DNA of 31,406 bases from Trichoplax adhaerens (Eukaryota; Animalia; Placozoa): positions 9,330,704 through 9,362,109 of the forward strand of contig NW_002060944.1 in the NCBI RefSeq assembly GCF_000150275.1. The letters are read 5' to 3'. Positions 17,233 through 31,406 of the stretch are shown one piece after another. Made by a program: the position numbers and the translations under genes. Under the pieces are notes generated by a model that had not been told where the DNA came from, searched no databases, and worked only from the letters and a program-made list of their open reading frames with translations. Position 1 is the first letter of the stretch; every line of letters begins with the position of its first letter.

Positions 17233-19706
17233 ATGGGAACGAAGCTATTGTTAGTTCTTTGAAGCACATCATTGGAGGGATGGGAAATTTTCGTGTCCCT
17301 TGGGGATGATTACTTTGTATTTCCTCAGGTAGATTGTATTCTAGAATGACATTTATAGGAATAGACTTTCGGTAAAATCTCAAATTCGAACATTTCGCAA
17401 AGTCTGAAGAGTCATTACTTTTTCAAAGAAAACTCAAAGGTGAAAAAAATATTCACAGGTACATTTAATCCTTCTGTAAGGCGGTTAAACATTGATAAAG
17501 TATTGTAATCTTTTTTGAAATAAACACTGACAGTAAAGTTTAAAAGATCAGTTATTGGGTAATTATAAAAGCTCTACTTATCTGCATAAGTGTATAAACT
17601 TTAGCGAGATTATTTTTTTATTTTTCGAAAAATAGCTCGTAAGATTTCAGTCTCTACTGAACCGATTCTTCGAGAAAAATAGCGTGCTTTGTTCTAAACA
17701 ATCTTTATAAGACACCTGCATAGATAATATAATTTAATAATCTATAAATTGCCGGGATTATGGTTAAGATTTCAATTCTCAAAATTAATAGCGTAGATTT
17801 TAACCCTGAAGGCATACTTTAACTATTCCATTAGTAGCAACAGGTTACCACTGATACTCTCATCAACTCTCTTACTCTATGCATCATAAATAGTCTTCAG
17901 TGTTGGTAAATTTGATATTCTTTATATCCATAACATATTCTTTGAAGGGCGCATTTACTTGTACGATATCTAAATCAGTCCTACATAGTATTCATTAGAA
18001 AATATGTTAGGAAAGAGACTATGTTCCTTTGATAGGTGCAATAAGAAGGAAATTAGGGTATTGTAGTAGTCAAGAGGAACATCGTTGTTTCGGAAACGCT
18101 TTCTCTACTTCTTGGTATAGATCTAAATATCACTGCAGTGAATTAGCATAAAGTTGGGCTTACTTGCTACTCTAGTTGATTTTAAATGATCTCATAATTA
18201 TAATTATTTGTATCTTTTGTGAATAAGATAAATGAATGCAATAATCTTGATTTAGTAAGATTTATTGAGATTCCACGAACTATAGCTTTATTCACTATCG
18301 CATCGAAATGCGATTGCATTTTTGTTAGCTATCAATCACAACAGTACAGCTTGATAGCACATTAAATGAGATCACGGTTATACTATCTATTACTACTACT
18401 ACTGCATATCATAACAAGGGTTGTTTCTTTTGTGAAGGATCGAGGCTTCACAATGCAGCCTTGTGACGATCTTCCTATTTGACTACTTTCTCTATAAGAT
18501 CTCCAATTTTCCTCTGAAGACCTTTCGTAGAGGAAACTTACTTATTCTGACTTCGTAATTTAGAGTCAACAAGTAGCAATGTAAGTCGAGGCACTTGACT
18601 AGCAAGGACTTTTAAGCCTAGGAGAGGCTATTGCTTACTGCTACGCCTTCAGGTGGAACTCAAGTTAACAACTTCATATTCATATCTTGAATTGATCCAG
18701 CTTCAATCCGAATTAAGAGCAAAATTCTAGAACTTCGGGCTTTAGCTAGCTATGTCAGTGCTTTAAGTTTAACGCTGATCACATTAATCGTTTTTCAACA
18801 GCCGGAATTCGGGTTTTAGCCGTAACATTTATACTCTTGTCTCAGTCACACAGGATACGGGCAAAAAGCATCCTGCATTTCACGATTCAGTATAGACTAG
18901 TGCAAACTCCCGTCGCTTTGCTGACGGTTTACGATAATGTGCTCATTTAACAGATAGTATTACCATTTGATAGACCTGTCAGATGTAATACTATATACAG
19001 TGTCAGTCAGTAATAGTACGGTTAAGACTGTTTTTGTGTGTTTGCGCTAATTCGATAATACCTAAAGTTAGTACGTTATAACTCGCTACTGTCACAAGTT
19101 ACATAATAATACTTGTGATTGAATAATTATAGTATTCTACAAATGTAACATACACTTGTTCAGTCTACGTGTTAATGGTGGATTGTACTGCGTACATTAG
19201 CGAATTCACTGTTTCACAAACTTGTAATTATAATGCGTTGTAAAAGTCAACGGCGTACGTATATAAGCCGCCACTTTTCAATACAATAAAGAGAGAGCAG
19301 AGTTAGTAGTCAGTTTTACAATAACTTCAATTACGTGTTTAATTTCTTGTCTCTACGCTAAGTGAGAGTGGTACGAACTTTCAATACAGTTGTTAGTATT
19401 AACTCTAGATAGTAATACACAACTGTTACGAAGCGTAGCTCCGTAAATTATAAAATAAGTAATAATAATTGATTAACCCGGGTTGTTTACCGTTTTGGTA
19501 GACAACCGTAGGGCATTAATACTGGTTGTTTACAATTATTATAAACGGAGCAATCAACAAAGGTTTAATTATATCTAGCTGGTTATAATATTGCTTAATA
19601 TAGGATTACCTTATGGGAGCGCACTGCTCTTGCAATTAATTACTCATATTGGTGCTGAGCTCATGCTCATCGATTGACTCATTAATTGGTTGCTATTCAT
19701 TAGTGT
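17233..19706 (+). repeat. Segment duplicated near-identically at 28913-31406 (copy 1)
   Basis: 17233-18308 aligns to 28913-29991 and 18817-19706 aligns to 30521-31405, with only scattered substitutions and small indels. The intervening ~510 bp matches the 529-N gap. Confidence 0.95.
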
Positions 19707-20884
19707 TGTTTACAAACTGAGCCCATACTAAGTGGTATTAATTGTCTGGGAGTATCTACCTAAAGTAACATATACAAATTGTGGAGGGAGCAACTTCCTA
19801 GTATGCCCCACAGATGAGTGGGGATGGTATAAAGACCGAGCGAATTATCACTCGCTAGTAGTAGTTGTTCCGGACTAGGATAATCTAGTAGAGACAAGAA
19901 ATTGGATGGCCGAATAAAAAGTACCAGTGGTTGGAGAGAAACCTTAGTAGTTGTGTAACTGTGTGGAAAGAGTTAGTTTTCACTTAGTAGAAGACTTCCA
20001 AGTCAGTGGAAGACTTACATAATTACTCTAGCACTTGATATAAACGAGTCATAAGAGGGATTTGCGACAACACTAGGCAACAATCTTCTCAATTAAGACC
20101 AAGTTCAGAGCGGGCTTCGTAACAGGCGGATTAGTATTAAAATGTATCCGCTCATCTGAATAAACCATAAAAGGCTTGTACTACTGCTAGTGCAAAAGCA
20201 AGGATAAAACTTACGAAAACCAATGCAGGGTGAATTAATGTAGTCTATACTTTACCATAAGTATAACAATGGGCTTCATACTTGTCACAGTCATCAAAAT
20301 AACTTATATGGATGTGTAATTTATGATAACATTTGGTTTTAAACTATTTAGAAGTATGAACTACTACTTTAGGAATGGTTATTGTTAGTATGTTGGTAGC
20401 ATAGTAAATATGTTTATAACTACTGAAAGAGTATATAAGAAGGACTGCGATCAATAAAAAGTGATTCAGGTTAAGGCTAAGTTGTGTGATAGTTTTATAT
20501 CGTACACTGTGTGGAGCGAGTTAGTACTTCGCAAGGATTCCAGTTACTATATCGTAGGCTAGGGAAGTAGTTCTGCGGATGAACGTAAAGTTTATTATAA
20601 GTACGGTATTGTTTTCTTGTGTCGCAAGGGTAGTTGTGGCAATACTCTATTCTGTTATGAATAGTGATAATAATCAGTAAAACCACTCACCTATTGCACT
20701 TATACTGGTTTTAGAAACGAAAAATCAGTTTTTATAACGTAAACGTATCAATTTAGTGACAATAATAAGCATAGAATAAAAGTTGCATTATTACCGAAGA
20801 ATTTGGGTAACTACGCGTGTTGCAGTACTGAGTTTAAATTAACCACAAATTTTCAACTTCGATCTTATTATTGAAGATTCAGCA

Positions 20885-21085
20885 ATGAAAACTAAGGTTG
20901 CTTTGGTTTCCATTTTATTCCTCGCTGTCGTTGTGGTAGAATGCAACGAAATAGAAGTTTCACTAGATGAGATAGATGAACCAATGATGGAATCGCATCT
21001 TGCAGATAAAGAATTGAATATCATGAACTGTAAGAATAACATCAATAAAGAAGATGCACTGGAGAAATCTATGGATGAGCTGAAT
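20885..21085 (+). CDS. Exon 1: signal peptide and acidic pro-segment (67 codons)
   Basis: The ATG is in a good context (GCAATGA). A basic n-region MKTK and hydrophobic h-region VALVSILFLAVVVV end at a V-E-C cleavage pattern, followed by a D/E-rich segment. A consensus donor AAT|GTGAGT follows. Confidence 0.85.
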
Positions 21086-24000
21086 GTGAGTATATATGCT
21101 TTTAGCATCAATTTCGTTATACCTTACCATTAGCAACTAGCCTACCGTTCAGAAATATTACGTCGTACTTCTCCTTGCAGTCGTAAGCTGCATGATAAAA
21201 ATCGTAGTTGAAGAGATCTCTATTCCTTAAATTATGGTAATTAATCGCTGCCTGGTCTTTAACTGCAAACTAATTTCTGTTTTGTGCAAGAATAAAACGT
21301 CGTTCGTGATATCTTATATGCTTACATGTTAGAAATTCGGCATCGTCGCTGATTTAGAAAGTATACTTAGTCAGATTAATGTAAGCGTATTATACTGTAG
21401 TCCAAATTACAAGTACGCGTATATGTTGCGTGGTGATGCTTTCATAGTCGGTAGCATGAATTACGCTATCGAACTTCAAGCCTTACCTAATTTGAATAAG
21501 TGAGAGGAGGCTTAAAAATATTTAACAATGGAATAGCTATATTGGAAATACTATATTTGAAGAATCATACTCTAGTGAAGGATAATAAATAGACAAGAGC
21601 TGTTTATTTGTAAGGCAAGTCCTATACAAACCAGAATAACTCGATTACAAAAGTACTAAAAATAGTTATCTTTACTGTTCCAAGCTGCGTGAGTATTAGG
21701 TGAGGTAAAGTGTAATTTAAGTCAGCAGATTACTTAAAGGCTTTTACTTTATGTTCTCTTGTTACAAAGATGAATTTGTGACACCTGATTGTGTCAGATC
21801 TAGTTGCGTTAAATATACTTTATTAAATATATTTTATAACTGTTATCGATTTCGATTCTAATTTTTAAAATTTAAACTTTCCGCTTTTATTTGGAAAATA
21901 CGCATTTGCTGTTCATATTGCGGACTGATAGTAATAGTAGTTAAGCAAATAAGATTGATGTTATGATATAAATTTTCTATCGTCATAAATTTATGAAATC
22001 AATATCAAGTTTTCATAGCAAATAATTAAGCAAATAACTCAGTACAATGTTTATCAAAAGATTAGCCTAATTATTACTAAAGTATCAGTGATGTCACTTA
22101 AATTATCTACTATTCTATGTACAGTATGTACCTACGTATTTATATATCTAGATTTTATAAAATATATGTAGGCACACGAATTACTAAGTAATTTTCTTAA
22201 ATTCACGTATCTATGCAATCCATATCGACTTCTTTGGAAAATATAAATCGAATTAAATAGCCCGTAAGTTAATACGTATTTGGATCATATTTACATCAAA
22301 TTTGTTCAATATTGTACTTAATTGAAAGTAATTCATAATTTACCTGCTAATGTCGATCTATATACGTAATATATTGAAAATAATGGCAATTGTGTTTAAG
22401 CAAATCAAAACTATTTATGGCGTAGCTAATTTATAAGTTCAAATTTTTTGATAAAATATACAGTTGACTAAATATAAAATGATTCTTTACTTGCTCTATA
22501 ATGCTTTCACGTTTTTGCATCTAAATGGCTATAAAATGTGGCCTCTTCGCTAATACGAATCAATACTACATAGCGCGTAAGTTATTCACTAGTGGATTTT
22601 ATTAATAAAATAGGTATAGTTATAGTTTAATTATTTTAATTAAAAATGATAAATCCAACAGTGTATTTAAATCACTCTTATTTTGATCTTTGGTATGTAC
22701 TTATACGTTTATATATTACTAAGTAATTTTCTTCAATTAACATGTTTATGCAATGGATACCGAATCCTTCGGCAAATCCTAATCGAATTAAATAGCCTGT
22801 AAGTTTACATTTGCATTTGGATTAGAGTTGTATAGTATTTGACTGAATTTATTATCATCAATAACTTACTTTTAAACGTTCGTACTTCTACAGAACTAAT
22901 CAAAAAATAATAATAACTGATTTAAAAAGATGAATTACTTATATATTTAATTTTAAACAGTTAATAGCTTATTCAAAGATAGTAAGTAGTTTCATGTACC
23001 TGTATTTAGCTACTGCATTCTAATTTATGCATTTACAACCATCGGTATCTAGTTGTGCATTTACGTATGTGTTACTAATTAAAGAAATATTTTTCCAAAT
23101 TCACATATTCATGCCATTGATAACGATTGCTGTGGCAATTCTAAATCAAACCAAATAGCAAGTAAGTTTATATTTATGTTTTGACAAGATTAAAATTTGT
23201 ACGGTGTTCAACTAATTTGAAATACTTTAAACATACTTGTTTGTCCGTACTTCTTCATGATTTATTGAAAATAATCATTTTTGAAATTGTGATTCACTTA
23301 CATAATTTATTTTTAAATAGTTAACGTTTATTTAAAAATTATAAACAATTTTTATATTCTCGTATTTTAAACACTTAATTTTAAAACTACTGTATTTATG
23401 ACCATCGATGAGCACTTGTGCATTCATGTATAACAAAGCGACTTTCTTAAATTTATATATCCATGTGATCAACACGGACTTCTTTGGAAAATCTAAATCG
23501 AACTATGTAGATCGTGAGTTCATATTTGTTCACATTTCATTTATGCAGTATTTGAATTAATTTATAAAATAATGAGAGCATATTTTTAAAATATCTAAAT
23601 ATCGTGTTCAAAATAATAAAAGCATTTATATATGTGAATCATTTATATAATTAATTTTTAAAACAGTTTACAGCTTTTGAATTGATAAATAAATAATTAT
23701 ATTCCCGTACTTTAACGACTGTATTTAAATTACGTATCATTATGATCATCGATGAGTACTTGTGCATTAATAGGTTACTAAGTACAGTAATGCTTTCTTA
23801 AATTTACATATTCATGTATGCGATATCGAATCCTTTAATAAATCTCAATCGAACCAAATAGAAAGTAAGTGCATATTTATATTTTGTTTGGATTAACTTT
23901 ACACAGTAATTGCAATCTAATCTGTAAATATCCGTATTTTTATTTAATCACATTTACAAATATCAAATTACTTACGTAATCAATTTTGAATTAGTTTACG

Positions 24001-27000
24001 ATTATAGAAGATAATAAACAATTTTACCCACTTTTAATAACTATTTAAAATTACTTGCATTTATGATCATCGGAATGTACTCGTAAAATTATGATTTACT
24101 AATTAATTTTAATGATTAATTTTCTTGAATTCTTATATCTTTGCAATCAATATTTACTCATTTGGTGAATCTAAATCGGATTACATAGTTCGTAAGTTCA
24201 TATTTGTATTTTGTTTTGATCAAAATTTGTACAGTATTTGACGGAAGCGAAATAATTAATGAATATCTTATAAATATTCGTACTAATATACGTCTTGCTG
24301 AAGATAATATTAACTAGGTTTGCAAATGTGGATCACTTATATAATTAGTTTTTCAAAGTAGTATATGGCTTTCGAATATATAAAAAATTTCAATATACTT
24401 TAACTACTGCTTTTAAATCATGTCCGTTTATCATTATGATCAGTATTTACTCGTGTATTTATAGTTTGTCAGTTGTCATGGACTAGTCTCCTGATCAGGG
24501 TGAAGTAAAGTATTCTGCTCTTTTAAGATGCTGCTATCAACTACCACTCTAATTTCTGCCTAGGACTACCATACTATACTGCTGTCACAGAGACAAACTA
24601 CACAAACTCAAGCTATTACTCTATTTCAACAACTGATTACAGCTATTTCTACTCGTAAAGCTACGTAAACTGCTAACAACAAACATGTATTTATAATTAT
24701 AAAAGAATCTCAAAAGTTTAGTCAACCTGACCTATAAAGGCGAAATTCACCACCACATTTGTGCAATGCTTTATCTATACTACTAATCACGATTTATTTA
24801 CACCGTGATAGAATTACTCAGAAATTTTCTTAAATTTTTATGTCTATGTAATCGATATCGACTCATTTGGTAAATCTAAATCGAACTAAATAGCATGTAG
24901 GTCTAGAAATGTTTGCATTTTGAAGATAATCAAAAATTTTATATACTTTAACTACATTATCTGTATCACATATATTTATCCTCATTGTCAGTGTATACCC
25001 ATGCAGCTATGCTTTACTAAGTAATATTTTTATTTTTTCATATGAATTCAATTGATATCGAATCATTTGGCGAATTGGAATCGAAATAAAATAGACCGTA
25101 AGTTTACATTTACGTTTTATGTTGATTAAATTTTTGCATTGTTTAGTTGAAATAATAAAACAAGTTTGCAAATACCAATATAATTAAGTTTCTAAGTAGT
25201 TTACAGCTTTTTGAATATAGTAAAGAGTTTTAGCTAATATAGTTCAACGGTTGTATTCCAATTGCATACATTAATCATCATAATCACTAGGTATTTTTGT
25301 TTTCATCTAATAATAAGAAATTTTCTTAAATTCTTCTATATATATATTCAATCGGTATCGACATATTTTGCAAATTTAAATTGGAAAAATAGCGTGTAAG
25401 TTTATATTTGTGTTTAATTTGATTGACTTAGTACAATACTTGATGGAAATAGTTGATAACTTATTTGTGAATGATCATATTTTCTATATACCTTACTAAA
25501 AGTAATAAAATTGTGTTTTTAAATGTTAATCACTTATGTAGTTAATTTTCAAGGCACTTTACGACTATTAAGATATAATGAATATTTGAATATGCAGTAA
25601 TTACTGATTTGAATGACAAGTATTTATGATCATTATCAATGTGCATTTATGTATTTATGCATTTTTAAGTAATTTTCTTAAATTCTATTATCTATACAAT
25701 CGATATCGAATCATTTGGAAAATTAAATCGGATTAAATAGTTCGTAAGTTTGTAGTTGTATTTCATTTTGATTGAATTAAAGGTTTATTTAACTGAAATA
25801 AAAATAATTAATAACTTGTATGCCAATTTTTGCACTCCTACATACCTTACTAAAGATTTTAACTATGTTTGGAAATATCAATCACTTACATAGTTAACTT
25901 TCAAAGTAGCTTGCTATATGACAAACAATTTTAGTATATTTTAACTTTTGTAAATTTCATGTATTTTATCATCATTATCACTGTGTACTTGTGTTTTCAT
26001 ACATTACTAAGCAAATTTTTTTTTAAATCTGATATCTATGCAATCGACATCAACTCATTCGGAAAATTTACTGTGAACTATGTATAGTTCGTAAGTTTAC
26101 GTTGTTTTTCATTAAATTTGCTCAGTATTTGACTTAATTGAAAATATTTAAAGTATTGCTTGTAAATGTCCTTATTTCTACATAACTGACTAAGAATAAT
26201 AACAAATACAGTTGCAAATATCATTTAGCTACACAGAATAATTAATTTTAAAGACGTTCATAGCGTTTTAGAAGAGAACTATATTTTAGATATACTTTAA
26301 CTACAGTAATCAAATTATATGTATTTATCATTATTATCAGTATAGACTTGTATATTTCTATAGTACTAAGTAATTTTCTTAAATTTTTATATTTATGCAA
26401 TCGATATCGACTCGTTTGGAAAATTTAAATTGGACTAAATAGTTCGTAAGTTCATAGTTTTGTTTTGTTTTGTTTTGTTTTAATTAAATTTATAAAAAGT
26501 CTGAATGAACTTATAATAGTTAATAACTTGCTTGAAAATGTTCGTATTCCTACTTGCCTTACTAGAATTAATAATAACTTCGTTTTATAATTAACTTTTA
26601 AAGAACTTTACGGCTTCTAGATCACTATAAACATTTTAATATACTTTAGATTTCGTATTTAAATTATATATATTTAAAATCATCATCAGTGTTTACTTGG
26701 GGATTTATGTATTGCTAAGTGATTTTCTTAAATTCTTATATCTACCTTATCAATACTAATTTATTTGGCAAATTTAAATCGGACTAAAACAGAATGTAAG
26801 TTTATATTTGTGTTTCAATTCTGATTAACTTTGTACAGTATTTGACTAAAATGAAATAATTAATTACTCACTTGTAAATATTCGCATTTCTACATACCTT
26901 ACTTAAAATAATAAAAACTACTTCTAAAAATGCCTATCACTACTATAATTAATTCTTAAAGTAGTTTGTGGCTTTTGAATGTAATAAACAGTTTGAGTAA

Positions 27001-28124
27001 ACTATTGTATTTAAATTATCATCATTATCAGTGCTTACTTTTACATTTATGTATTATTAAGTAATTTTCTTTAATTCTTTTATCTATGCAATCAATATCG
27101 ACTCATTCTTTTAATCTAATCCGAATCAAATAGGCTGTAAGTTTATATCTGTGTATTATTTTGATTAATTTTGGAAATTATTTAACTAAAAAGAAAATAA
27201 TTATTAATTTACTTATAAATATTCGTATTTCTACATTCCTTCTTGTTGTGAGATCCCAAATTAGCTCAGGATAAAAATTATTAGATTTTATATAGAAATC
27301 ATAGAATTTGTTGTAATAATTCAATAAAATGTAGACAGAAGATAGATATTCTTTGTTATAGGTAGAATAATCTGGGCTATGTGATACAGTAAAATTTCAC
27401 TAGGAATACTACAGCATTTATAGTTCTAATATTATTTTAGACAGTCCTACTGAATCTTATTGATTCCAATAACTAATACTTTTATCTTTGTGAATTCTTT
27501 CATCTATAATTAGAAAAATGAACTTTAGCTGAGATAGCATTACATAATTATTATTATTACCCAATATAAGAAATTACAATTTGAACGTAATAAACATCTT
27601 TGCATAATTTTTTCTATGTTAATCTCTGAATCGGCCTTCACCATTCGTTTCGAAATTGGCCAACTTTTTAGGGAGTAAGTTTGCAATGCGGTCGAATTTA
27701 AAATGTTTTAAATGCATAACTATAATTAAAAAAATGAACTTTAGCTATGATAGCATTACATAATTATTATTATTACCCAATACAGGAAATTACTATTTGA
27801 ACATAATAAACGTCTTGCATTATTTTTTTATATGTTAATCTCTGAATTGGCCTTCACCATTCGATTCGAAATTGGCCAACTTATAGGGAGTAAGTTTGCA
27901 ATACGATCGAATTTAAAATGTTTTAAATGCATAACAATAAGTATATACAATTAAAAGAGGAATTAGATTCTAGCGCTTCTAAGATAGATAAAAATAACTT
28001 TATATCTATGAAGTTCTTACTAAATCTTACTTCTAATACCAACATTTATATTTTTGTTAATTTTTTTTCTGTACACCTTCGCATCAACCCTTAGAAAAGG
28101 AAGAAGAAATCAATGCAAATCTAG
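20885..28124 (+). CDS. Predicted micro-exon gene encoding a secreted prepro-peptide: exon 1 (signal peptide + acidic pro-region), 17 three-nucleotide exons, 30-nt last coding exon
   Basis: Exon 1 (20885-21085) ends in phase 0 at GTGAGT. Seventeen AG|NNN|GT cassettes follow between 22261 and 27889, then exon 28095-28124. Phase-0 product: MKTKVALVSILFLAVVVVEC-NEIEVSLDEIDE...KSMDELN-(SQIN/IN?)-PRPQIKFHTRFFFNAGG-KRKKKSMQI*. No transcript evidence is available to me. Confidence 0.7.
22080..27240 (+). repeat. Diverged tandem array of ~350-bp intron/micro-exon units (15 cassettes)
   Basis: Recurring core: TTACTAAGTAATTTTCTTAAATTC..ATATCTATGCAATCGATATCGACTCATTTGGAAAATCTAAATCGAACTAAATAG-NNN-GTAAGTTTATATTTG. 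Triplets are at 22261 CCC, 22574 CGC (divergent flank), 22796 CCT, 23159 CAA, 23511 ATC, 23862 AAA, 24189 TTC, 24894 CAT, 25095 ACC, 25393 CGT, 25741 TTC, 26088 TTC, 26443 TTC, 26793 AAT and 27134 GCT. Confidence 0.92.
24474..24811. mobile_element. Solo LTR-like insertion within one array intron
   Basis: About 338 bp of non-array sequence with imperfect inverted ends TGTCATGG...CCGTGATA. It explains the 705-bp spacing between the TTC (24189) and CAT (24894) cassettes. Confidence 0.55.
27504..27935 (+). repeat. Recent ~215-bp tandem duplication, each unit carrying a GGA micro-exon (27672-27674, 27887-27889)
   Basis: Two highly similar units with ...ATTGGCCAACTT(T/A)TAG|GGA|GTAAGTTTGCAAT. The unit sequence is unrelated to the main array. 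Confidence 0.9.
28095..28124 (+). CDS. 30-nt exon downstream of the micro-exon array (KRKKKSMQI* in phase 0)
   Basis: A poly-T tract and CCCTTAG acceptor lie upstream and a TAG|GTAAGA donor downstream. A further acceptor (TTTTTACTTTGTAG) lies at 28462. Confidence 0.65.
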   Translation, partial: KRKKKSMQI

Positions 28125-28862
28125 GTAAGAATTTGATTTATATTGGCATATTCTGTAATCCAGCTAATCTGGTACCATTTAAAGGTAACCGACAAAGCTA
28201 TGAATAGCCTATTAAAGCATTGTATCATACGAACTGTAAGAGTATGTAAAATACTATATAATATTGCACAACTCATTCAAAGAAATCTAGTACGGATTCA
28301 TTACTCTGCGGAGGCGAAGGATGTTCGTATTTCGTAGTAAATGTTCTAGTGTAACATTGTCACAGCTACTATGCTAAGATAGCAATCAGTTACAATAATC
28401 AGTCATGAAGTATTCTATTAAAGCTAATCTCAAATAATTATCATTGCTTTTTTACTTTGTAGAAAAACAGCAAACCAATGGCTTTCAGTTGAAAAGTAAA
28501 ATTGCAAAAATGATCGATATTTGCTGATTCGAGAATTCTTGTTGCCATGTAGTGCATATTAGGTTGTATTGACAGTTACATTTGATATACCGTGGTCGGA
28601 TTTCTAATAATAGAAAATATTACCGTAATGCTAATATTAGACGATGGCTAATTATTATATTGGAAATTGTTGATGACTATTACTAGTTACTTAAGTATGG
28701 TACAACATTTATATGACGCGATGTACTGCAATTGTAAAGACGCACAACACCTTTACGGTATTGGACAATTGTAGAAAAGTAATGATATTTCAAACAGATT
28801 GGTTCGTACGGTTAAATAGATTGGTTATCTATTTAAGGAAATGTGTTCTATTAGATGACTAA

Positions 28863-28912
28863 NNNNNNNNNNNNNNNNNNNNNNNNNNNNNNNNNNNNNN
28901 NNNNNNNNNNNN
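28863..28912. other. Assembly gap (50 N)
   Basis: Run of N. Confidence 0.99.
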
Positions 28913-31406
28913 ATGGGACGAAGTTATTGTTAGTTCTTTGAAGCCATCATTGGAGGGATGGGAAATTTTCGTGTCCCTTGGGGATGATTACTTTGTATTT
29001 CCTCAGGTACATTGTATTCTAGAATGACATTTATAGGAATAGACTTTCGGTAAAATCTCAAATTCGAACGTTTCGCAAAGTCTGAAGAGTCATTACTTTT
29101 TCAAAGAAAACTCAAAGGTGAAAAAAATATTCACAGGTACATTTAATCCTTCCTACGTAAGGCGGTTAAACATTGATAAAGTATTGTAATCTTTTTTGAA
29201 ATAAACACTGATAGTAAAGTTTAAAAGATCAGTTATTGGGTAATTATAAAAGCTCTACTTATCTGCATAAGTGCATAAACTTTAGCGAGATTATTTCTTT
29301 ATTTTCGAAAAAATAGCTCGTAAGATTTCAGTCTCTACTGAACCGATTCTTCGAGAAAAATAGCGTGCTTTGTCCTAAAAAATCTTTATAAGACACCTGC
29401 ATAGATAATATAATTTAATAATCTATAAATTGCCGGGATTATGGTTAAGATTTCAATTCTCAAAATTAATAGCGTAGATTTTAACCCTGAAGGCATACTT
29501 TAACTATTCCATTAGTAGCAACAGGTTACCACTGATACTCTCATCAACTCTCTTACTCTATGCATCATAAATAGTCTTCAGTGTTGGTAAATTTGATATT
29601 CTTTATATCCATAACATATTCTTTGAAGGGCGCATTTACTTGTACGATATCTAAATCAGTCCTACATAGTATTCATTAGAAAATATGTTAGGAAAGAAAC
29701 TGTGTTTCTTTGATAGGTGCAATAAGAAAGGGAAATTAGGGTATTGTAGTAGTCAAGAGGAACATCGTTGTTTCGGAAACGCTTTCTCTACTTCTTGGTA
29801 TAGAACTAAATATCACTGCAGTGAATTAGCGTAAAGTTGGGCTTACTTGCTACTCTAGTTGATTTTAAATGATCTCATAATTATAATTATTTGTATCTTT
29901 TGCGAATAAGATAAATGAATGCAATAATCTTGATTTAGTAAGATTTATTGAGATTCCACGAACTATAGCTTTACTCTCTATCGCATCGAAANNNNNNNNN
30001 NNNNNNNNNNNNNNNNNNNNNNNNNNNNNNNNNNNNNNNNNNNNNNNNNNNNNNNNNNNNNNNNNNNNNNNNNNNNNNNNNNNNNNNNNNNNNNNNNNNN
30101 NNNNNNNNNNNNNNNNNNNNNNNNNNNNNNNNNNNNNNNNNNNNNNNNNNNNNNNNNNNNNNNNNNNNNNNNNNNNNNNNNNNNNNNNNNNNNNNNNNNN
30201 NNNNNNNNNNNNNNNNNNNNNNNNNNNNNNNNNNNNNNNNNNNNNNNNNNNNNNNNNNNNNNNNNNNNNNNNNNNNNNNNNNNNNNNNNNNNNNNNNNNN
30301 NNNNNNNNNNNNNNNNNNNNNNNNNNNNNNNNNNNNNNNNNNNNNNNNNNNNNNNNNNNNNNNNNNNNNNNNNNNNNNNNNNNNNNNNNNNNNNNNNNNN
30401 NNNNNNNNNNNNNNNNNNNNNNNNNNNNNNNNNNNNNNNNNNNNNNNNNNNNNNNNNNNNNNNNNNNNNNNNNNNNNNNNNNNNNNNNNNNNNNNNNNNN
30501 NNNNNNNNNNNNNNNNNNNNTAGCCGTAACATTTATACTCTTGTCTCAGTCACACAGGATACGGGCAAAAAGCATCCTGCATTTCACGATTCAGTATAGA
30601 CTAGTGCAAACTCCCGTCGCTTTGCTGACGGTTTACGATAATGTGCTCATTTAACAGATAGTATTACCATTTGATAGACCTGTCAGATACTATATACAGT
30701 GTCAGTCAGTAATAGTACGGTTAAGACTGTTTTTGTGTGTTTGCGCTAATTCGATAATACCTAAAGTTAGTACGTTATAACTCGCTACTGTCACAAGTTA
30801 CATAATAATACTTGTGATTGAATAATTATAGTATTCTACAAATGTAACATACACTTGTTCATTCTACGTGTTAATGGTGGATTGTACTGCGTACACTAGC
30901 GAATTCACTGTTACACAAACTTGTAATTATTATGCGTCGTAAAAGTCAACGGTGTACGTATATAAGCCGCCACTTTTCAATACAATAAAGAGAGAGCAGA
31001 GTTAGTAGTCAGTTTTACAATAACTTCAATTACGTGTTTAATTTCTTGTCTCTATGCTAAGTGAGAGTAGCACGAACTTTCAATACAGTTGTTAGTATTA
31101 ACTCTAGATAGTAATACACAACTGTTACGAAGCATAGCTCCGTAAATTATAAAATAAGTAATAATAATTGATTAACCCGGGTTGTTTACCGTTTTGGTAG
31201 ACAACCATAGGGCATTAATACTGGTTGTTTACAATTATTATAAATGGAGCAATCGACAAAGGTTTAATTATATCTAGCTGGTTATAATATTGCTTAATAT
31301 AGGATTACCGTATGGGAGCGCACTGCTCTTGCAATTAATTACTCATATTGGTGCTGAGCCCATGCTCATCGATTGACTCATTAATTGGTTACTATTCATT
31401 AGTGTA
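28913..31406 (+). repeat. Copy 2 of the 17233-19706 segment (contains N gap 29992-30520)
   Basis: Direct, near-identical match to 17233-18308 and 18817-19706. Confidence 0.95.

Follow-up and report, generated by a model that had tools for sequence, protein, structure and literature searches.

An array of one-codon exons in a Trichoplax adhaerens gene for a putative secreted cationic peptide

Can exons of a single codon be strung together to write the mature part of a secreted peptide, and what kind of peptide would result? The question is raised by a stretch of 31,406 nucleotides (nt) of Trichoplax adhaerens DNA (GCF_000150275.1, contig NW_002060944.1, positions 9,330,704 to 9,362,109), in the following called the window, which comes from an assembly of 105.6 Mb in 1414 contigs. 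Here an exon for a predicted signal peptide is followed by scattered triplets between splice signals and by a 30-nt exon. The original prediction, made from the sequence alone, had read the spliced product as a prepro-peptide of neuropeptide or antimicrobial type ending in G-K-R. We found that 17 triplets are exons, spliced in genome order into RNA, with the second GGA joined to AAAAGG.

Three-base exons and their splicing

The pattern AG-NNN-GTRRGT has 18 matches in the window, all on the plus strand between 22259 and 27895, where 2.25 were expected; none of 100 shuffles reached 18. Translated in order, 17 of the 18 triplets give P R P Q I K F H T R F F F N A G G. Most of them belong to repeat units of about 350 bp that have diverged from one another.

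Contigs of sequencing runs were compared with the window over 22760-28759. Since the gene spans 7.7 kb, the donor of exon 1 at 21085 lies outside this stretch. Run X9 is registered as an RNA library and X5 and X7 show RNA-like behaviour; the RNA-type runs come from three studies. X1, with even coverage, served as a DNA-like control. The contigs give no expression levels and word depth was used qualitatively only. The array consists of the following features, with the triplets numbered ME1 to ME17:

22261-22263, plus strand: ME1, CCC (Pro); opening letters of the X5 overhang ahead of 24189
22574-22576, plus strand: ME2, CGC (Arg); in overhangs of X5 and X7
22796-22798, plus strand: ME3, CCT (Pro); in overhangs of X5 and X7, directly followed by CAA, with ATA at 22979 skipped
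23159-23161, plus strand: ME4, CAA (Gln); GT..AG joint 23161>23511 in X9
23511-23513, plus strand: ME5, ATC (Ile); joints from 23161 (X9) and, with AAA between, to 24189 (X7)
23862-23864, plus strand: ME6, AAA (Lys); joint 23864>24189 (X9), and between the two sides of the X7 joint
24189-24191, plus strand: ME7, TTC (Phe); acceptor in three joints or overhangs
24894-24896, plus strand: ME8, CAT (His), donor GTAGGT; joint 24896>25095 (X5), first codon of the 30 letters displayed for X7
25095-25097, plus strand: ME9, ACC (Thr); joints from 24896 (X5) and to 26088 (X7)
25393-25395, plus strand: ME10, CGT (Arg); first half of CGTTTC within the X7 joint 25097>26088
25741-25743, plus strand: ME11, TTC (Phe); second half of the same CGTTTC
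26088-26090, plus strand: ME12, TTC (Phe); acceptor of the X7 joint, with an X5 overhang beginning past 26090
26443-26445, plus strand: ME13, TTC (Phe); opens the X5 overhang past 26090
26793-26795, plus strand: ME14, AAT (Asn), acceptor CAG; in the X5 overhang and the 30-letter X7 overhang
27134-27136, plus strand: ME15, GCT (Ala); GCC in the Trichoplax H2 assembly and in X7 mRNA, silent in phase 0 only
27504-27940, plus strand: tandem duplication carrying both Gly cassettes, period 216, copies 91% alike, separate from the units of about 350 bp
27672-27674, plus strand: ME16, GGA (Gly), first Gly cassette; the X7 overhang ends GGA GGA, and an X5 contig splices ME16 directly to 28095
27887-27889, plus strand: ME17, GGA (Gly), second Gly cassette; GT..AG joint 27889>28095 (X5), missing from the H2 assembly
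28095-28124, plus strand: 30-nt exon, in phase 0 K R K K K S M Q I with TAG as its last three bases; AG at 28093-94, GT at 28125-26, joints into 28095 and 28124>28463 (X5, X7), identical in H2
28463-28759, plus strand: last exon, 3' untranslated in phase 0; contigs extend beyond 28759, with overhangs past 28756

Joints of GT..AG type are distributed along the array. A single X9 contig of 1457 nt carries 23161>23511 (ME4/ME5) and 23864>24189 (ME6/ME7) while keeping neighbouring introns. X7 contigs join 23513 to 24189 with AAA between (ME5/ME6/ME7) and 25097 to 26088 with CGTTTC between (ME9-ME12), and X5 contigs join 24896 to 25095 (ME8/ME9) and 27889 to 28095 (ME17 to the 30-nt exon). The 28124>28463 joint occurs in X5 and X7 and shows the highest word depths of the compared stretch. 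Overhangs lengthen these chains: ME1-ME6 ahead of 24189 in X5 connects ME1-ME7, ME2-ME4 ahead of 23511 in X7 connects ME2-ME5, and ME13-ME15 past 26090 in X5 connects ME12-ME15. An X7 overhang ahead of 28095 measures 81 letters, as 51 triplet letters and 30 letters of the upstream exon add up to this length, and its displayed 30 letters read CAT ACC CGT TTC TTC TTC AAT GCC GGA GGA (ME8-ME17). The ME7/ME8 joint is not among the listed joints and is implied by the length of this overhang only. The word depth of junction contigs lies, in qualitative terms, far above that of intron contigs, and the X1 contigs contain none of the splice joints of the array over the stretch compared. Two observations of the original prediction are thereby borne out, the spliced order of the triplets, all 17 of which appear in genome order in contigs of X5, X7 and X9, and the position of the Gly cassettes directly before K-R, which is seen in RNA as the GGA/AAAAGG junction (27889>28095 in X5, overhang in X7).

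The eighteenth pattern match, ATA at 22979-22981, was rejected as an exon: it is absent from the RNA chain, in which ME3 CCT is joined directly to ME4 CAA. In the X9 contig (22921-25053) the ME4-ME5 and ME6-ME7 introns are removed, and three introns are retained, the one ahead of ME4, the one from ME5 to ME6 and the one that follows ME7; the introns of the array are therefore not removed strictly from 5' to 3'. Within the ME7-ME8 intron, an insert at about 24440-24790 is lacking in the other repeat units and has a much higher word depth in X5 and X7; X1 has several overhangs here, at 24453, 24713 and 24745. The insert resembles a dispersed repeat or mobile element transcribed elsewhere. An X1 contig that goes back 4317 bases (27076 / 22760), with 21 other letters between its sides, is most likely a chimera of similar repeat units and not biology.

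Downstream of the gene a run of N (28863-28912) is found, and window 28863-31405 repeats a region about 11.7 kb upstream. Its parts 28913-29991 and 30521-31405 match the H2 stretch equivalent to window positions of about 17236-19700 at 99% and 95%, respectively. The repeat is either a tandem duplicate of the upstream part of the gene or an assembly artefact.

Exon 1, reading phase and relatives

The ATG at 20885 on the plus strand opens exon 1 (20885-21085, 201 nt or 67 codons), which is followed by GTGAGT and so ends in phase 0. Three features were assigned to it, with the cut site of the signal peptide judged by eye:

20885-20944, plus strand: codons 1-20, predicted signal peptide with a basic start, a hydrophobic core and V-E-C ahead of the likely cut; alignable with the signal peptides of five paralogs
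20945-21085, plus strand: codons 21-67, acidic pro-piece with 14 D/E and 4 K/R, ending in phase 0 before GTGAGT, exactly where H2 model P0001 terminates
21030-21035, plus strand: candidate alternative donor GTAAGA, seen in the sequence only; would give phase 1 if used and is disfavoured by the exon-1 phase of the relatives and by triplet composition

Exon 1 is 99% identical to the H2 gene model P0001 (NCBI entry) and the H2 locus (L001) and the window share 97.5-99% identity, so that the gene can be taken as a placozoan nuclear gene. The public H2 model is marked partial, its final residue being the last codon of exon 1 (21085), as would be expected if transcript evidence could not be aligned past that donor. 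The full-length protein was not found in public protein sets, in which the exon 1 query matches only the truncated P0001, and the public databases searched hold no record of the exact product. With exon 1 as query no orthologue was found beyond Trichoplax H1 and H2, and a second copy of exon 1 was not found in the genome.

Paralogs were identified by searching the genome with exon 1, each exon being searched individually. Together with the window gene (A) and the gene of trichoplaxin-2, paralogs B to E make six genes, whose exon-1 peptides align over a conserved signal peptide and acidic stretch. The window gene shares the family's signal peptide feature, M-N/K-x-K followed by a hydrophobic run with L-F-L or L-L-L, as well as an acidic pro-piece occupying the remainder of exon 1 up to a phase-0 end and a cationic C-terminal peptide after it. 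A profile built from the first exons of D, E and trichoplaxin-2 gave the window gene 17.1 bits and gene C 22.7 bits, scores that none of 1000 shuffles reached. This control is lenient for signal peptides, and for this reason we grade the evidence that the window gene belongs to a trichoplaxin-2-like family as good but not overwhelming. Gene B is connected to the family solely via gene A (E 1e-3).

Two types of gene structure are found among these relatives. Genes B and C carry arrays of three-base exons reading as basic peptides; in D, E and the trichoplaxin-2 gene the last exon is an ordinary one, rich in Arg. Paralog B (G000:C1394:621049-625400; L012 5050-9400) has a signal-peptide and acidic exon 1 ending in phase 0, ten predicted three-base exons (I Q R K T R H R T S) and a last exon homologous to that of the window gene; a 30-nt exon and a Gly-dibasic site were not seen in its genomic sequence. 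In paralog C (G000:C1385:30260-34800; L018 4261-8791) exon 1, again of phase 0, is followed by at least 17 three-base exons (W S R R R R H T G R R Q T I W S A), and S-S-T-G-stop would follow from a candidate 25-nt exon at about L018 8908-8932. Genes D and E (G000:C1411:8142361, L028; G000:C1411:4733370, L029) are ordinary two-exon relatives with Arg-rich last exons, that of E ending in W-G-K-K-stop. Exon 1 of E matched no public protein, so the gene is probably unannotated. The triplets of gene C start with W-S-R-R-R-R, as does the ordinary exon of gene E, which suggests that the triplet arrays occupy the position of the ordinary cationic exon of the relatives. The 21-residue trichoplaxin-2 peptide has an exact match on C1378, where it follows W-W and 13 Arg within one exon; the idea that this peptide, too, is written in one-codon exons was accordingly rejected, as it lies in one ordinary exon. 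A third repeat match, on C1402, was tried as a further array, and no array is present there.

The mRNA read in phase 0 encodes ...N-A-G-G-K-R-K-K-K-S-M-Q-I-stop, and exon 1 is very probably joined to the array in this phase. In six of six related genes exon 1 runs from ATG to a GT[AGT]AGT donor in phase 0, and in D, E and the trichoplaxin-2 gene it continues in that phase into the ordinary Arg-rich exon. For the trichoplaxin-2 gene this phase fits the precursor based on an expressed sequence tag (EST), of which residues 71-86 cover the junction and the Arg run (PMC7436000). Triplet composition points in the same direction: the 44 triplets of A, B and C contain no stop codon in phase 0 (P 0.027), 16 basic codons against a background of 11% (p 1e-5) and 9 CGN codons against 2% (p 3e-7), and their GC content is 49-59% in surrounding introns of 26-29%. 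Neither phase 1 nor phase 2 yields basic products, and phase 1 is interrupted by a stop in gene C. Among the triplets, the window differs from H2 and from X7 mRNA solely by GCT/GCC in ME15, a change that is silent in phase 0 only. The last exon and the intron preceding it are equally alike (68%) between A and B, which gives no frame signal. Phase 0 as proposed in the original prediction is thus upheld by indirect lines, namely the six relatives, triplet composition, the silent GCT/GCC change and the end of the H2 model, with the RNA comparison starting at 22760.

The kind of peptide

In phase 0 the window gene has the layout of a signal peptide, an anionic pro-piece (about -10) and a cationic tail (about +8), and this charge-balanced layout is common to all six genes. 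The tail of 26 residues contains 8 K/R (3 from the triplets and 5 from the 30-nt exon), one His contributed by the triplets and no acidic residue. The layout of signal peptide, acidic pro-piece and cationic, aromatic C-terminal peptide described in the original prediction is supported by these counts. Since exon 1 is akin to the prepro part of the trichoplaxin-2 precursor, the alternative named in that prediction, an arminin-type antimicrobial, is strengthened; the trichoplaxin-2 precursor consists of signal peptide, acidic propeptide and C-terminal antimicrobial peptide, and the synthetic peptide was active at 0.25-2 uM (PMC7436000).

We therefore rank a host-defence-type peptide first and a regulatory peptide second: the gene probably encodes a cationic peptide precursor of host-defence type, a judgement held with moderate confidence, within which amidation is possible. 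Exon 1 would supply the signal peptide and the anionic pro-piece of a small secreted prepropeptide of trichoplaxin-2 type, and the Phe-rich cationic mature part would be encoded by the 17 three-base exons, one codon each, and the 30-base exon ending in the stop. Judging from the layout, the pro-piece would mask the C-terminal peptide after signal cleavage, and the latter could then be released and secreted as a membrane-active host-defence-type peptide. G-K-R may be cut and the exposed Gly amidated, as assumed for trichoplaxin-2 (G-K) and paralog E (G-K-K), both of which end in Gly and basic residues.

Several points weigh against this reading. The tail is short and has no obvious amphipathic helix, and its ending F-F-N-A-Gly resembles the regulatory peptide FFNP-amide. 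As for the family, pairwise E-values between first exons are weak (1e-3 to 0.5), and any signal peptide with an acidic stretch beats shuffles. Phase 0, on which the peptide depends, is supported by indirect lines, since the stretch compared with RNA begins downstream of the exon-1 donor.

An amidated regulatory, neuropeptide-like precursor is possible but less likely. A convertase would cut at K-R and the basic residues would be trimmed, leaving ...F-F-F-N-A-G-amide or ...F-F-F-N-A-amide, perhaps with N-P and R-P trimmed by dipeptidyl peptidases and the Gln then exposed cyclised to pyroglutamate at the N-terminus; pQIKFHTRFFFNAG-amide, the mature product named in the original prediction, is a guess along these lines. 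The GGA/AAA AGG adjacency is present in RNA and gives G-K-R if phase 0 holds, and in that case the gene combines a signal peptide with a Gly-dibasic site as amidated neuropeptide precursors do. H2 retains G-K-R, its 30-nt exon being identical, the F-F-N-A ending is like that of Trichoplax FFNP-amide, and basic sites N-terminal to the peptide are often absent from placozoan and cnidarian precursors. Domains of processing enzymes are encoded in the genome as well: PF01082 (copper monooxygenase), which is not specific to the amidating enzyme, and PF01483 (proprotein-convertase P domain) gave matches above cut-offs. Against a regulatory peptide stand its single copy without repeated peptide units, the sequences of paralogs B and D, in which no Gly-dibasic site was found, and the five-residue basic run and four-residue tail after Gly. 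The placozoan regulatory peptides assayed to date are, moreover, far less basic than this tail, and the nearest characterised relative, trichoplaxin-2, was assayed as an antimicrobial. The number of Gly residues varies, too. Among X5 contigs, some splice the first GGA to 28095 and others the second, so that one-Gly and two-Gly forms both occur and the putative amidated end, which would differ between them, is not fixed. Splice order, GGA/AAAAGG junction and layout of the original prediction hold, and its strict neuropeptide reading is weakened by the paralogs without the site, the varying Gly number, the single copy and the very basic tail.

The H2 assembly has one Gly cassette instead of two. 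In the part corresponding to 27885-28094 (L001 at about 20600-20640) the flank ...CCAACTTAG runs straight into AAAAGG of the 30-nt exon, and one GGA with its 205-nt intron is absent. X9, which is filed under another species label and was taken for H2, has a contig colinear with window 27811-28270. These observations point to either an allele difference or an assembly collapse near a contig end. Elsewhere in the T. adhaerens genome, about 9-10 tandem copies of a copper type II monooxygenase gene (PF01082) lie within 105 kb at G000:C1411:2806000-2910400, a large local expansion of PHM/DBH-like enzymes.

The array can also be viewed as an evolvable 'peptide typewriter', in which duplication of a unit would add a residue, a change of the triplet would swap one and skipping of a unit would remove one. 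The Gly cassette was observed both in gained or duplicated and in skipped or absent form (two versus one). That the array works in this way, with a genuinely amidated F-F-N-A(-G)-amide as its output here, be it a signal or a defence peptide, is a speculative and rather unlikely proposition.

We consider it improbable that the product is a secreted but unprocessed protein, or a young, fast-drifting family member with no specific function, in which G-K-R arose by chance from Gly cassettes beside a Lys/Arg-rich exon. The site occurs once, in a tail with K or R at 8/26 positions, Gly cassettes are unstable in number, and no orthologue was found beyond Trichoplax H1 and H2. Against this reading stand contigs with spliced junctions far deeper than intron contigs (a qualitative comparison), the coding-type composition of the triplets and the charge-balanced layout in six genes.

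Least credible is a phase-1 product, for which the donor at 21029/GTAAGA would be used and the triplets read across their borders (...S-P-P-S-N-Q-I-P-Y-P...), without G-K-R, up to a TGA near 28526: the donor at 21030 is plausible, no stop interrupts this frame in the 30-nt exon or in the next 21 codons, in the last exon, and the RNA comparison began downstream of the exon-1 donor, but the phase-0 exon 1 of all six relatives, the stop in paralog C, the restriction of basic-codon and CGN enrichment to phase 0 and the silence of GCT/GCC there all speak against it, as do the H2 model, which reaches 21085 with the frame open from 21030 to 21085, and a last exon no better conserved in paralog B than the intron ahead of it.

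Known systems and meaning of the gene structure

The nearest analogy to the array is provided by the schistosome micro-exon genes (MEGs), in which the mature part of a secreted protein comes from many symmetric micro-exons behind a signal-peptide exon. MEGs are not known to have exons below 6 nt, whereas all array exons of the window gene have 3 nt, and the phyla are unrelated. Frog precursors of the dermaseptin type are alike in layout and not homologous: within the gene family a conserved signal and acidic pro-region precedes a hypervariable cationic peptide, with K-R before the mature peptide and ordinary exons.

Closer at hand is the trichoplaxin-2 precursor of the same genome (EST GR418172.1; PMC7436000), which shares a related signal and acidic pro-piece, the phase-0 exon 1 and a cationic C-terminus with Gly and one or more basic residues at or near its end. 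Its cationic part is one exon (W-W, 13 Arg and a 20-residue peptide), whereas that of the window gene is split into 17 one-codon exons and a 30-nt exon, and the mature sequences are unrelated. Hydra arminins and the 'arminin-like' putative antimicrobial peptides of Trichoplax (PMC12013895) likewise combine a signal peptide, a strongly acidic N-terminal and a basic C-terminal part with a C-terminal Gly thought to be amidated. They have 150-250 residues compared to about 93 here, micro-exons are not reported for them, and the likeness is one of layout only, no sequence comparison being involved. A search of the supplement of PMC12013895 gave no match for the signal peptides of the family. Placozoan prepropeptides of the FFNP-amide type (bioRxiv 10.1101/360925) are secreted and have acidic residues ahead of the peptide, Gly and basic residues after it and an F-F-N-x ending; the placozoan regulatory peptides tested in that study are mostly acidic or neutral, in contrast to the very basic tail of the window gene. 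A literature search yielded no match for short strings of either reading frame or for the H2 locus tag, and no paper on nuclear micro-exons in Trichoplax; elsewhere in the searched literature single 3-nt exons appear only as isolated cases.

In summary, the product adds a member to a kind of precursor already described, trichoplaxin-2-like or arminin-like. What is new is the gene structure, in which the first 17 residues of the mature part each sit on an exon of their own, with support from RNA. Public gene models end at exon 1, and this is why placozoan peptide and single-cell catalogues lack both the peptide and its relatives; with a corrected gene model, amidation, the producing cells and a role in defence or signalling become testable. 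If the typewriter view were true, one family of secreted-peptide genes could diversify residue by residue. Relatives with ordinary two-exon structure and relatives with one-codon exons together form a natural system for the origin and recognition of 3-nt exons.

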